From positions 8,578 to 72,577 of the forward strand of contig NIVC01003877.1 in NCBI GenBank assembly GCA_002269645.1: DNA of 64,000 nucleotides, in the 5' to 3' direction. Below the pieces are notes generated by a model. The model saw nothing but the letters and a program-made list of their open reading frames with translations, was not told the DNA's origin and made no database searches. This DNA is from Macrostomum lignano (Eukaryota). A program made the position numbers and the translations under genes. Of the stretch, positions 6,840 through 55,600 are shown piece by piece; the first letter of the stretch is position 1, and the number at the start of each line of letters is the position of its first letter.

Positions 6840-9800
6840 ATGTCCAGTGAGGAGGCAGCAGAATTGGCTGCTGAAGCCACCGAGTCGCCTGTTCTGAGCG
6901 AATCGGTGGAGTATTCATCTCTTAATCTCAAGCACTCACCGTCTCCTACCCTGGAAGAGGGTCACGTGATGTCCGATCGGGTGCAAAGTTTGGCCAGTCA
7001 AATCTACACAGAATTTGAAAATATGATTAAAAAATATGACGAAGAGGTTGTGAAAGATTTGATGCCACTTATTGTAACGGTGCTGGAGAATCTTGAGCGA
7101 GCCATCACTGAGCGAGGCCAATTTGAAGTTAGTTTAGAGTTGCTGAAAGAGGACAACCACCAGCTATTGTCCCAGTTTGAACGGGAGAAACAGATGCGAA
7201 AGACTGCCGAAGATCGAATGTTTCTAACTGAGGAGGCGGCTGCTGAAGAGAAAGCGAAGTTTTCCGAAGATAAAGACAGTCTTCAGTCCATCTGCAAGAT
7301 GCTTGAGCTCAAGGCCAGGAATGCTCAGGTGCGGGAGTTTTTTGTAGAAATCTGCAGGTGGGAGATATGATTGTACAGGTGTGGGATATGATTGTACTGG
7401 TGTGGGATATGATTGTACTGGTGTGGGATATGATTGTGCAGCGGTTGTGCAGCGAAGCTGTTCAACCGGATGCTGCTTTCGCGGTTGCAGCCCGTGCTGG
7501 ATCCGTACCTGCGCCCAGAGCAGAACGGGTTCCGGCCCCATCGCGGCACAGTGGCGCAGATCCTGGCTCTTCGCCGAGTCATCGAGGAGGCGCGGATTCG
7601 TCAGTCGATACTGATTTTAATCTTTATTGATTTCAAGAAGGCATTCGACTCGGTTGTCAGAGCCGTGCTTCCAATGGTGCTCCGCGCGTACAACGTGCCT
7701 GAGCAGCTGATCTCCGCCGTCATGGCGATGTACCGTGATACGACAGCTGCTGTGACAACACCGGACGGCCTATCGGACTCCTTTGAGACATCCTCCGGAG
7801 TGCTTCAGGGAGATACGCTGGCGCCGTTTCTGTTCGTCCTGGTGCTTGACTGGGTGCTGCGGACTGCTCTTCCTACCGACGACGACGGTTTTCTGCTGCA
7901 GCGACGCGTGGGTCGACGTCAACCGGAGAAGCGGCTCAGCGTGCTTGGCTACGCCGACGACCTCGCCCTGCTGTCCTCGACCGTCGAGGGCGCCCAACGG
8001 CAGCTGGACAGGCTGGTTGCCGTTGCGGCGAGTGTCGGCCTGGTGGTCAACACGCAGAAGACCGTTGTGCTCTGCGTGCCGGACGACATCGAGGCTGCAA
8101 TATTTTGCCGAGGCGCTGACGGGCAGGCGACCGAACTCCCGCGATGTCAGCAGTTCGTCTACCTCGGCGGTCTGGTTCCAGACGCTCGCGAGGACCTGCG
8201 ACGCCGCCGCGGGCTTGCCTGGGCTGCCTTTCGTTCTGTGAGGGCAGTCCTGCAGTCCGAGGCCCTACCGGACCGCCAGAGGGCGGCGCTGTTCCAGGCG
8301 GTAATCGAGACCGTCCTGCTGTACAACGCCGAGACCTGGACGCTGACGGACTCACTCGAACAGCAAGTCGATGCGGCGCACGCTGGTCTGCTGCGCGCCG
8401 CCTTCAACATCGGCGTCGAGCGAGTCACCAACGCGGCACTCTATCGCCGCGCTGGCCTGCCACGTCCAAGTGATCTACTGCGCCGTCGGCGACTCCAGCT
8501 CGCAGGCCATCTCATCCGCGCCGAGTCGTACTGCCCACAGCCGGTGCAGGAGGTGCTGCTGCTCACGCTGCAGGCACCCTACCGGCGAGGTCAAGCGCGA
8601 ACTCGGCGTTATGTCGACTGTCTGCTGGCTGACGCCGGCGCCCCGGACACTGCCGGTGGCGCGGCCTTTGTTCGCGCCCAAGCCATGAAGCGCGCCCTGT
8701 GACGCTGACTTTTACCATCATGACAGCGTATTTTGTTGTTGTTGTTGTTGGGATATGATTGTACTGGTGTGGGATATGATTGTACTGGTGTGGGATATGA
8801 TTGCACAGATGTGGGATATCATACATGCGCAACAGTCGGCCGAGTCGGCCGATCCGGCCGACCGATTTGGCAGCCAATCAAGGAAGTCGCAAAAATGCCC
8901 ACCCGAAAAAATACCAAAGTAGTATTACTAAGTAGCTGGCGAGGCATTTTGACCTAATAAGACAGTCATAGTTACTCCTGCCGTTTACCCAAAGTTGCGT
9001 TAATTTTGCGTATGGTTTTTTTAATTACATGTAAGTCGCATTTTTGGCCAAAAACTACGTCGCATTTTTGTTAAAACTAAGTCGCATGGCCGACTGAATT
9101 TTGGAGGTTGCGCATGTATGTGGGATATGATTGTACAGGTGTGGGATATGATTGTACAGGTGTGGGATGTGATTGTACAGGTGTAGGATATGATTGTACA
9201 AGTGTGGAATATGATTGCACAGGTGTGGGATATGATTGTACAGGTGTGGTATATGATTGCACAGATGTGGGATATGATTGTACAGGTGTGGGATATGATT
9301 GCACAGATGTGGGATATGATTGTACAGGTGTGGGATATGATTGTACTGGTGTAGGATATGATTGTACTGGTGTGGGATATGATTGTACTGGTGTGGGATA
9401 TGATTGTACTGGTGTAGGATATGATTGTACTGGTGTGGGATCTGGTGATGCAGGTGTGGGATCTGTTGGTACAGGTGTGGGATCTGTTGGTACAGGTGTG
9501 GGATCTGGTGATGCAGGCGTGGGATTGACTAAGTGTAGAATTGAGTTCAATCAAGTGTGTGATACTCTTAGTATTCCCCTTTGCGTAACTCTTGCTTCCA
9601 TCTTGGCGGGGCTGCAATAAAAGGGGGGAAGAATTGAATTAAACAGCAGAGCTAACTCTGCAACTCCGCTAATCAGGACCAGGTCAGCCGGCTAGAAGAG
9701 AAAGAGCGAGAGTTGCGTCGCGAGCTGCAGAATTGCCGAGACAAATACACTGACCTGTTGCGCACCCACACTGAACACCTTGAACGAACCAAACTGCTGA

Positions 9801-52665: not shown

Positions 52666-55600
52666 CTAATGGCCGCGTACTGACAGATAGATGATCAGGG
52701 CCAGGATTCCCGCCACAACAATGCCAACGATGATTAAAATGATGCACTTCTTGCGGGCCTTGCGCTGAAGTGTTTTTAGTGGGATTATTATCCAATAGTG
52801 AGGGATATGGGATATCCAATAGTGAGAGATATGGGATTATCCAATAGTGAGAGATATGGGATTATCCAATAGTGAGGGACATGGGATTATCCAATAGTGA
52901 TGGATATGTGATTATCCAATAGTGAGAGATATGGGATTATCCAATAGTGAGAGATATGGGATTATCCAATAGTGATGGATATGTGATTATCCAATAGTGA
53001 GAGATATGGGATTATCCAATAGTGAGAGATATGGGATTATCCAATAGTGAGGGATGTGGGATTATCCAATAGTGAGGGATGTGGGATTATCCAATAGTGA
53101 TGGATATGTGATTATCCAATAGTGAGAGATATGGGATTATCCAATAGTGAGAGATATGGGATTATCCAATAGTGAGGGATATGGGATTATCCAATAGTGA
53201 TGGATATGTGATTATCCAATAGTGAGAGATATGGGATTATCCAATAGTGAGGGATATGGGATTATCCAATAGTAAGGGATATGGGATTATCCAATAGTGA
53301 GGGATATGGGATTATCCAATAGTGAGGGATGTGGGATTATCCAATAGTGAGGGATGTGGGATTATCCAATAGTGAGGGATATGGGATTATCCAATAGTGA
53401 GGGATATGGTATTATCCAATAGTGAGAGATATGGGATTATCCAATAGTGAGGGATATGGTATTATCCAATAGTGAGAGATATGGGATTATCCAATAGTGA
53501 GAGTGCAGTGATCCGCTAGTTAATGTTAGGCGTCGCACTTTGTCAGCAGTTGCCCTTGCCCTCGCCCTCGCCCTGGGTTGCTGTCTGCCGCTGATCAGCT
53601 TCCCGCCTCCCTTCTTTTGGCTGTCTGTTGCTACTCCCTTCCCTCCTTCTGCCCGTGTTGCCCTTCGTTTCTCAGCCCTCAGCTTCTCTGCTGTGGGCTG
53701 TCCTTGTTTCGTCAGTCTCTGTTTCCCTGTCATGTGAGCCAGTCACATGACAGGCCTTGTTTTCTTGGAGTCTTAAAGTGCAGTAAACATTTTTACTGCA
53801 CTCGCTGGTCCTGTTTACCGGGAGAGTCACGTGCTTACGGCCCCCTCCCTTCTCTAAGGAGAGGAGTGATTCATGTTGCTAAAAATAGCAACTGAGTCAC
53901 AGCCGCGTGCACTCTGCCTGAAGACCCCAAGTAACGTCAGTTCTAAGAATAGAACGAGTCACGAGGTCTTGCGCGCATTGGGACTCTGCCGGAGGCTTTG
54001 AGTGACGTCAGTTCTAAAAATAGAACGAGTCACGAGATATTGTGCAATGGACCAGGGGTGAATCCCGCGCTATAAATAGGACCCCCTCCCCTTGTTTCCG
54101 TCAAGGAGTCTCTAGTTTCTAGTTCTTAGTTTCGAACTTCCGAGTCTAAGTTTGAGTCACCCGTTTTCTAAGTGCCTGCGTTCAGTGAGTTCTCTCCTAT
54201 TGGTCTGACTGTGATCCCACTAAAGTCAACCCTTGCCTAAGAGAGACTAACACCGCTCTCCCTGCACTAACCAAGCCCGGCAGGTACTGCTAACGAGACG
54301 CCTGTTACATTGAGCTGCAAATCTGCTCCCGGTGCTGTGTTCGTTGACTTCGTTATTTCGTTCCGACGGGAAGCTCACCTCATCGAAGGCCGAGACCTGA
54401 AGGAACTGGTGGCAGCACTACCTACGCTACTGAGAATTGAGAAGGCTTCCGAGTGAGAAGACGGAGAGCCCAAATCACTGTGCTAGACAGCAGGAGACGC
54501 ACAAGTACTTCACTGGTGGCAGCGGTGGGATTCAAAGACCTACCCGGCCACTTCGAGACAACCCCGAGACAACTCTAAGTACTACAAGAGATATGGGATT
54601 ATCCAATAGTAAGGGATATGGGATTATCCAATAGTAAGGGATATGGGATTATCCAATAGTAAGGGATATGGGATTATCCAATAGTAAGGGATATGGGATT
54701 ATCCAATAGTAAGGGATATGGGATTATCCAATAGTGAGGGATATGGGATTATCCAATAGTAAGGGATATGGGATTATCCAATAGTGAAGGATATGGGATT
54801 ATCCAATAGTGAGGGATGTGGGATTACCCAATAGTGAGGGATGTGGGATTATCCAATAGTGAGGGATGTGGGATTATCCAATAGTGAGGGATATGGGATT
54901 ATCCAATAGTGAGGGATGTGGGATTATCCAATAGTGAGGGATGTGGGATTATCCAATAGTGAGGGATGTGGGATTACCCAATAGTGAGGGATGTGGGATT
55001 ATCCAATAGTGAGGGATGTGGGATTATCCAATAGTGAGGGATGTGGGATTATCCAATAGTGAGGGATGTGGGATTATCCAATAGTGAGGGATGTGGGATT
55101 ATCCAATAGTGAGGGATATGGGATTATCCAATAGTGAGAGATATGTGATTATCCAATAGTGAGGGATATGGGATTATCCAATAGTGAGAGATATGGGATT
55201 ATCCAATAGTGATGGATATGGGATTATCCAATAGTGAGGGATGTGGGATTATCCAATAGTGAGGGACATGGGATTATTAAATAGTGAGGGATATGTGATT
55301 ATCCAATAGTGAGGGATATGGGATTATCCAATAGTGAGGGATATGGAAATATCCAATAGTGAGGGACATGGGATTATCCAATACAGAAAGAACATGACGA
55401 TAGAGACGAGAACAAAGGATGTTTAAAAGGGCCTAAAATATTGTCAACAAAATGCAGCTAAAAATAACCTTTAACGACAAAGGAACACTTTAAACGTATG
55501 ATTCAGGTGCCAAAACAAAATTCCCATTTTTCAATTCTATTGGGATAGAAGCAGGGAAATTGCAATTAAAATTGATTAAACGAACCCGAAATTAAACAGC

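Follow-up and report, generated by a model that had tools for sequence, protein, structure and literature searches.

The stretch of DNA analysed here (the window) comprises 64,000 nucleotides of the flatworm Macrostomum lignano, from contig NIVC01003877.1 of assembly GCA_002269645.1 (positions 8,578 to 72,577, forward strand), and holds four transposable elements inserted in three minisatellite arrays whose units share a TGGGAT core. Protein comparison showed the WD40 exon at 26161-27615 (484 amino acids) to be 99% identical to M. lignano BOX15_Mlig008884g2, the locus of which corresponds to window positions 10480-40210 at 100% identity. Pfam searches outlined a JIP3/4-type gene on the plus strand, with an RH1 exon that has a splice donor near 7345 and the WD40 exon at 26.1-27.6 kb, and a minus-strand protein kinase gene is nested within it. 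Around the two arrays that lie further downstream (A2 and A3 below), no host gene was identified. A Pfam search of 148 reading frames of at least 60 amino acids found host domains only and no coding transposon remnant outside the arrays, and Rfam gave no match in the window.

The TRF program delineated 56 merged tandem arrays totalling 24.2 kb, or 38% of the window, and 42 of the arrays are at least 100 bp long; about 35 had been counted in an earlier reading made from the letters without database searches (the sequence-only reading). In the pre-insertion sequence, the share of arrays is 40.4%. The published genome average for simple and tandem repeats in the M. lignano assembly Mlig_3_7 is 15% (PMC5730564), so that the locus, at 38%, is unusually array-rich. 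According to the same study, repeats account for over half of the genome, LTR (long terminal repeat) retrotransposons amount to 21% and 180 Mb lie in duplicated blocks that are at least 95% identical (PMC5730564). That repeat landscape concerns the same assembly, and its duplicated blocks are the source of the paralogs compared below, but insertion sites were not analysed there by tandem-repeat family. A full-text search of the literature found no account of insertion sites in relation to minisatellite families in M. lignano.

The three interrupted arrays (A1 to A3, delineated by TRF) and their inserts are listed below, with terminal inverted repeats abbreviated as TIR and target site duplications as TSD:

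7355 to 9525, plus strand: array A1, a 21-bp minisatellite with unit CAGGTGTGGGATATGATTGTA, 565 bp long without its two inserts
7438 to 8748, plus strand: insert 1, a 5'-truncated RTE-like non-LTR retrotransposon with a reverse transcriptase (RT) frame, a 3' untranslated region (UTR) and a (TTG)6 tail
8820 to 9120, no strand assigned: insert 2, a non-autonomous TIR element of 301 bp with TIR CATACATGCGCAAC matching at 14/14 and an 8-bp TSD
49028 to 51206, plus strand: array A2, a 23-bp minisatellite with unit GACATGGGATGCTTATCCATAGG, 997 bp long without its insert
49655 to 50812, plus strand: insert 3, the 3' part of a 5'-truncated non-LTR retrotransposon with an RNase H domain, a Cys/His-rich C-terminus and a (GTAA)n tail
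52787 to 55383, plus strand: array A3, a 25-bp minisatellite with unit GATATGGGATTATCCAATAGTGAGG, 1509 bp long without its insert
53504 to 54586, plus strand: insert 4, an LTR-like element of 1083 bp with TGCAGT...ACTACA ends (TG...CA), a TATA-like TATAAATAGG and an internal 45-bp duplication

The sequence-only reading had placed these elements to within 2 bp, and each was found to have an exact TSD, both by direct reading of the junctions and by a scripted check. Removal of the element and one copy of the TSD restores the array in every case, with a period of 21, 21, 23 and 25 bp across the joint and a match of 1.0, 0.95, 0.77 and 0.96, respectively. The TSDs and the restored units thus confirm the earlier claim that all four insertions are younger than their arrays, and the elements do belong to unrelated classes, namely an RTE-like long interspersed nuclear element (LINE), a TIR element, an RNase H LINE and an LTR-like element. 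An assembly artefact or chimera was rejected in view of the exact TSDs at all four junctions and of an intact array in a paralog.

Insert 1 has 420 codons without a stop, the stop codon standing at 8700-8702, and 32 bp of 3' UTR lead from there to the (TTG)6 tail. RVT_1 (Pfam, E=1e-25) is the sole domain in 422 amino acids, with no RNase H. The TSD, TGGGATATGATTGT (14 bp), is found at 7424-7437 and 8749-8762, its first TG being ambiguous with the tail. Four other copies of the family (L004, L005, L007 and L008; 75-92% amino acid identity) share this type of tail, (TTG)n, and then run into unrelated, non-TGGGAT flanks, in which no motif is common with TGGGATATG or from one copy to another; a further relative, L006, ends within the reading frame and is uninformative on the flank. 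In L005, a 75%-identical relative, the RT has an Exo_endo_phos reading frame upstream of it, which together with the tail of the four relatives points to a LINE of the apurinic/apyrimidinic endonuclease (APE) type. The RT, the APE of its relatives, the lack of RNase H, the short 3' UTR, the tail, the truncation and the TSD all fit such an RTE-like element. Scans of metagenome DNA with the end of the TIR element and the 3' end of the LINE returned 0 matches, apart from one chance match.

Insert 2 is flanked by TGGGATAT (8 bp) at 8812-8819 and 9121-9128. It had been described as a hAT miniature inverted-repeat transposable element (MITE), and the 8-bp TSD and the perfect TIR stood, but the terminus is CATAC and does not fit YARNG, the terminal motif of hAT-type elements. 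The element fits hAT by its TSD only, and P, Merlin and other superfamilies with 8-bp TSDs are possible as well. Insert 3 has an RNase_H domain (Pfam, E=1e-13), 355 codons without a stop and a Cys/His motif in the translation, and its TSD, TATCTGTGGGAAT (13 bp), is found at 49642-49654 and 50813-50825, the first TA being ambiguous with the tail; it fits a non-LTR retrotransposon with RNase H, I/R1/Tad-like, whose RT part is absent owing to 5' truncation. Insert 4 is bounded by AGAG at 53500-53503 and 54587-54590, and its 5' end TGCAGT agrees at 5/6 bases with TGTAGT, the 3' end in reverse complement. No further copy of it was found in the window or in the two paralogous copies described below. 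Its termini, 4-bp TSD and size indicate that it is probably a solo LTR.

The two LINEs would have arrived by endonuclease-dependent target-primed reverse transcription, as suggested by TSDs of 13-14 bp, intact microsatellite tails, 5' truncation and a microhomology of 2 nt between tail and target, an overlap that is usual for this process at the nick site. Endonuclease-independent capture of LINE cDNA where fragile arrays break was rejected, both LINEs having TSDs of this length and complete tails. To judge by its anatomy, insert 2 would have moved by cut-and-paste with an 8-bp staggered cut, and insert 4 may go back to an LTR retrotransposon integrated with a stagger of 4 bp and subsequently reduced to a solo LTR.

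Three copies of the locus are present in the assembly: the window, L003, which lies on contig NIVC01001237.1 and is 99-100% identical to window 10885-40766, and L002, which lies on contig NIVC01000040.1 and is about 96-97% identical to window 1-39466. The latter two were found via a WD40 protein cluster, which holds two further M. lignano proteins. A2 and A3 lie beyond the ends of L002 and L003, and the paralog comparison covers the A1 side only. A1 is intronic and begins about 10 bp past the splice donor of the RH1 exon of the JIP3/4-type gene. At L002 10564-11331 it follows this exon at the equivalent place as an uninterrupted 768 bp, without insert 1 and without insert 2; the empty-site check proposed by the sequence-only reading therefore succeeded for A1. 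It follows that A1 predates the split of the window and L002 copies and that both A1 insertions postdate it. Since A1 is found at the corresponding intron position in L002, where the elements are absent, the possibility that it is an internal repeat of a larger element was rejected. The number of foreign elements found inside arrays of L002 and L003 was 0.

Nearly all minisatellites stand at the same position in all three copies. Almost all length differences between the window and L002 are changes of copy number within arrays, which can be wide (83 vs 1577 bp at 20722-20804; 1736 vs 826 bp at 33860-35595), and many arrays have identical lengths in the window and L003. According to this comparison the intronic arrays are old and keep their positions between duplicated copies, and their copy number changes quickly.

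An array-blind census was obtained by chaining collinear blocks between the window and L002 over 39.5 kb and listing every gap. Clean TSD insertions numbered two in arrays, both in A1, and two in non-array DNA, arrays making up about 39% of the DNA. A scan of the window for perfect 8-bp TSDs with inverted ends recovered three elements, of which two lie in non-array DNA, and 0 in shuffled sequence. The elements in non-array DNA are the following:

3766 to 4696, no strand assigned: TIR element of 931 bp with TIR GGGCTTCTTCAA matching at 11/12 and a perfect 8-bp TSD CAGATTGT
7693 to 8153 of L002: MITE of 461 bp with TSD TGCATGCC, for which the window has the empty site
3436 to 3591, no strand assigned: MITE of 156 bp with TIR CAGGGGYGGAC and TSD GCTTTTAT
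59915 to 60356, no strand assigned: candidate MITE of 442 bp with a perfect 19-bp TIR CACAGATACTAGAATAACT and an imperfect 7-bp flanking repeat, CTAACCG / GTCACCG

The empty site of the 931-bp element is a single CAGATTGT at L002 7456-7463. The MITE at 3436-3591 is older than the split of the copies, because it is also found in L002. This MITE had been taken for the only TSD-bearing element outside arrays, a view overturned by the 931-bp element, which had been missed, and also by the candidate MITE; the earlier census is incomplete in ways that favour the idea of arrays as insertion sinks. The count of non-array insertions is itself a lower bound, which works in favour of ordinary insertion, and undetected ones in 40-64 kb can only weaken the clustering.

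Ambiguous cases in the census were an indel of 221 bp at 17655-17875 with 3-bp microhomology, an indel of 164 bp within a (TCTA)n array at 29830-29993, which the window shares with L003 where the array of L002 is continuous, and complex replacements within an old RTE-like remnant at 274-2241. The 164-bp gap, in a non-TGGGAT array, was not accepted as a further array insertion, being an indel of ambiguous polarity. The 202-bp gap at 36307-36508 was rejected as a further array interruption since it is found in all three copies, and the split CTGCCGATCTAT arrays (42204, 44732) were likewise rejected, as they represent a segmental duplication that includes the left flank. The old, degraded RTE-like RT remnant lies outside arrays on the minus strand (274-491 and 2002-2241, tblastn) and has 32-46% amino acid identity to the young copy; the segments 482-1777 and 1891-2426, in or beside it, have other sequence in L002, with no clean TSDs.

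When 5, 6 or 7 insertions are counted as detected in the window, the probability that at least 4 of them lie in arrays is 0.09, 0.19 or 0.30, and for the paralog census the probability of at least 2 of 4 in arrays is 0.51. Measured against an array share of 40.4%, these values give no sign that insertions are drawn to, or kept in, arrays as a whole. A general role of arrays as an insertion sink or haven is supported neither by the paralog census (2 in vs 2 out) nor by the window (4 of 6-7, P=0.19-0.30). The narrower claim, that all three hit arrays have a TGGGAT core, holds for all four array hits, but the core also occurs in four arrays that were not hit. The shares of the classes are:

Three hit arrays: 5.2% of the window, 13% of array DNA
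All TGGGAT/ATCCCA-core arrays: 10.0% of the window, 24.8% of array DNA
All GGGAT/ATCCC-core arrays: 14.3% of the window, 35.4% of array DNA

The four unhit TGGGAT/ATCCCA arrays, with a total of 2.8 kb, are:

11257 to 11666
16014 to 16439
33860 to 35595, minus strand: the largest array of the window, 1736 bp, with unit ATCTCATCCC (TGGGAT core on the minus strand), free of insertions in all three copies of the locus
55722 to 55948

We consider it probable that the window records four real, recent, ordinary and independent insertions, brought together by chance and visibility in an array-rich locus in which GGGAT is the commonest array core. Arrays form about 40% of the local DNA and insertions there would be tolerated; such insertions would also be far easier to see without tools than those in unique DNA. 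The presence of a TGGGAT core in all hit arrays would mostly reflect the local abundance of that core (a quarter of array DNA, or a third for GGGAT, with two of the larger arrays among them), the remainder being a small-sample coincidence, and a dedicated sink mechanism would be unneeded. The four elements fit ordinary, weakly selective integration, not site-specific families. Several observations pull in the other direction. Nominally the clustering is improbable, since four of the seven detected insertions fall within arrays that account for 5-10% of the window (P=2e-4 to 3e-3). To correct for the choice of the class in hindsight, length-weighted random hits on the 42 arrays were simulated and scored for all hit arrays sharing any frequent 6-mer; four hits gave 0.007 for either strand and 0.0015 for the same strand, and three hits gave 0.04 and 0.014. 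In A1, inserts 1 and 2, which depend on different enzymes, have TSDs that both begin with the T of TGGGAT in the unit, 71 bp apart. The G-rich strand is on the same DNA strand in all three hit arrays and mostly on the opposite one in the unhit core arrays. Finally, the other LINE copies were found on short metagenome contigs; these disfavour array flanks and possibly belong to related species.

Such a pattern could arise if TGGGAT minisatellites with the G-rich strand one way were true multi-family hot spots for endonucleases, transposases and integrases, by virtue of open or unusual chromatin, a bound protein recognising the core, or DNA conformation. The placement of all four array insertions in 13% of the array DNA, post-hoc-corrected P values of 0.0015-0.04, the common TSD phase in A1 and the constant orientation of the core all speak for this explanation, which we nevertheless regard as unlikely. 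The clustering is suggestive, but of its four events two fall within a single array, and the class was defined once they had been seen, in a scan for anything unusual. The four other core arrays, one of 1.7 kb among them, were not hit, the unhit core arrays are also without insertion in L002 and L003 where covered, and the 768-bp A1 of L002 is intact. The cut positions differ relative to the core, the TSD starting at the T of TGGGAT in both A1 insertions and ending at a GGGAAT variant in A2 and, in A3, lying 3 bp upstream of the core. A shared hairpin structure was rejected, as the hit arrays rank 7th, 16th and 25th of 42 in predicted single-strand hairpin energy and are not outliers, and a G-quadruplex cannot be the common factor because A1 has one G-run per 21 bp, without closely spaced G-runs. 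The other copies of the insert 1 family, moreover, lie outside such arrays. The corresponding proposition, that 21-25-bp TGGGAT-core minisatellites with the G-rich strand one way are a preferred landing site for at least four unrelated element classes in M. lignano, appears about as unlikely; if it were true, the integration machineries would sense in common some array-wide feature such as a chromatin state, a core-binding protein or replication/repair behaviour.

It is also conceivable, though improbable, that each element has its own loose sequence preference met by the unit motif, which an array offers 25-60 times per kb, and that the sharing between families is coincidental. The 2-nt microhomology between LINE tails and nick sites (TG with (TTG)n, TA with (GTAA)n) is consistent with this, and LINEs, MITEs and helitrons that target microsatellites provide precedents (PMC3812793). 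Two nucleotides of microhomology are, however, available almost anywhere, and the 3' flanks of the four other LINE copies have no motif in common. The four 8-bp TSDs (GCTTTTAT, CAGATTGT, TGGGATAT and TGCATGCC) likewise have no common pattern, although they belong to different TIR families. Uniform integration followed by differing retention, in which selection or array turnover removes elements more slowly from arrays and survivors accumulate there, seems very improbable. The sequence-only reading had spoken of safe havens inside introns, which is correct for A1 as regards its intronic position, its insertions leaving the exons intact, but no host gene surrounds A2 and A3 as far as could be identified. 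Passive accumulation near microsatellites is known for Waldo-A/B in Drosophila (PMC3812793). Against retention, arrays as a whole show no excess, and the hit arrays are like the other 39 in position, size and homogeneity (84-95% matches, within a range of 71-100%). With its sense orientation and a distance of about 95 bp downstream of the RH1 splice donor, the LINE in A1 is not in an obviously safe place, and the insertions of like age in non-array DNA, whether intergenic or 5'-flanking, were equally tolerated.

Several APE-type LINEs are known to target microsatellites: Waldo (ACAY), Mino (AC), Kibi (TC), Koshi and Dong (PMC3812793). They resemble the LINEs described here in their endonuclease type, in their microsatellite-like 3' tails and in lying within tandem repeats between TSDs, but nearly every copy of theirs is in the target repeat and the tail matches the target (PMC3812793). 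The RTE-like LINE, in contrast, has four other copies outside TGGGAT arrays, the tails (TTG)6 and (GTAA)n have only 2 nt in common with the target units, and the arrays concerned are minisatellites. Among DNA elements, Micron MITEs occupy (TA)n in rice and MINE-1 helitrons (GAAA)n in Lepidoptera (PMC3812793). Like insert 2 these are non-autonomous and lie within a tandem repeat, but they are single families with a strict target, whereas one copy of insert 2 is available and two of the three TIR elements with 8-bp TSDs in the window are outside arrays. Nested insertions also occur in satellites and centromeric repeats. The closest working analogy is probably passive accumulation, as in satellites or for Waldo-A/B near CA repeats in low-recombination regions (PMC3812793), where several unrelated classes come to lie in tandem repeats without a sequence-specific mechanism; it differs in concerning heterochromatin or regions of low recombination, while the arrays here are short (0.5-1.5 kb), A1 is intronic and there is no array-wide excess over the length expectation.

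If the clustering were real, it would point to a sequence-defined class of minisatellites that steers transposition away from genes, in a flatworm that serves as a subject of transgenesis, and this would bear on the landing places of transgenes and mobile elements. As it stands, the value of the locus is mostly cautionary: with 40% of the DNA in tandem arrays, array insertions are both expected and the most visible, and paralog comparison directly recovers insertions in unique DNA that are otherwise invisible.

The GGGAT/ATCCC motif recurs in the units of about 12 otherwise differing minisatellites, which together form 35% of array DNA and are found at:

10206 to 10884
11257 to 11666
13244 to 13479
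16014 to 16439
33860 to 35595
37019 to 37641
49028 to 55948
61136 to 62097

This recurrence could stem from shared ancestry or from a core that promotes the formation of arrays. The units of A2 and A3 both have ATGGGAT...TATCCA and may be kin by descent. The array at 61136-62097 contains runs of the 7-bp unit GGATTAG (TTAGGGA in another register) and resembles an interstitial telomere-type repeat with one base added. Around 11257-11666, three adjoining arrays switch orientation (10196-10219 vs 11257-11280), from GGGAT... to ATCCC... and back to GGGAT..., and form long imperfect inverted repeats of foldback-like appearance that are kept in L002 and L003. The CTGCCGATCTAT array is present twice together with about 25 bp of its left flank, at 42190-42397 and 44712-45286, as a local duplication with a spacing of 2.5 kb. 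The 209 codons found between the two copies, at 44086-44712 on the minus strand, form the first exon of a rhodopsin-type receptor with the DRY-like motif IDRYLAV; a search of the protein collection at E<=1e-30 gave no match, and the exon is thus apparently unannotated. ARAGORN predicted a 92-nt tRNA-Thr (GGT) at 15668-15759 on the minus strand, which is doubtful and has no Rfam match at the gathering threshold.

RTs 75-92% identical to the M. lignano LINE were encountered on short contigs of environmental metagenomes (P0010, P0015, P0037 and P0046), which suggests that flatworm DNA is present in these samples:

JGI 3300043259
JGI 3300038379
JGI 3300037309
JGI 3300043176

A 38%-identical RT, P0111, is labelled as part of a gammaproteobacterial metagenome-assembled genome, probably through contamination.

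Some differences between the copies concern host genes. A two-exon gene of 162 amino acids is annotated in L002 and L003, and the copy in the window (32960-33436, minus strand) departs from both by five single-base indels. The simplest explanation is that long-read consensus errors were left uncorrected in this 72-kb contig, which would also explain why the gene has no annotation there. The JIP3/4-type gene is annotated for its C-terminal half only (615 amino acids) in the window contig and in L003, and as a full 1293-amino acid model in the insertion-free L002. In the kinase gene region, 255 bp of L003 (11896-12150) replace 53 bp of the window (22375-22427) in non-array DNA, in copies that are otherwise 99-100% identical.

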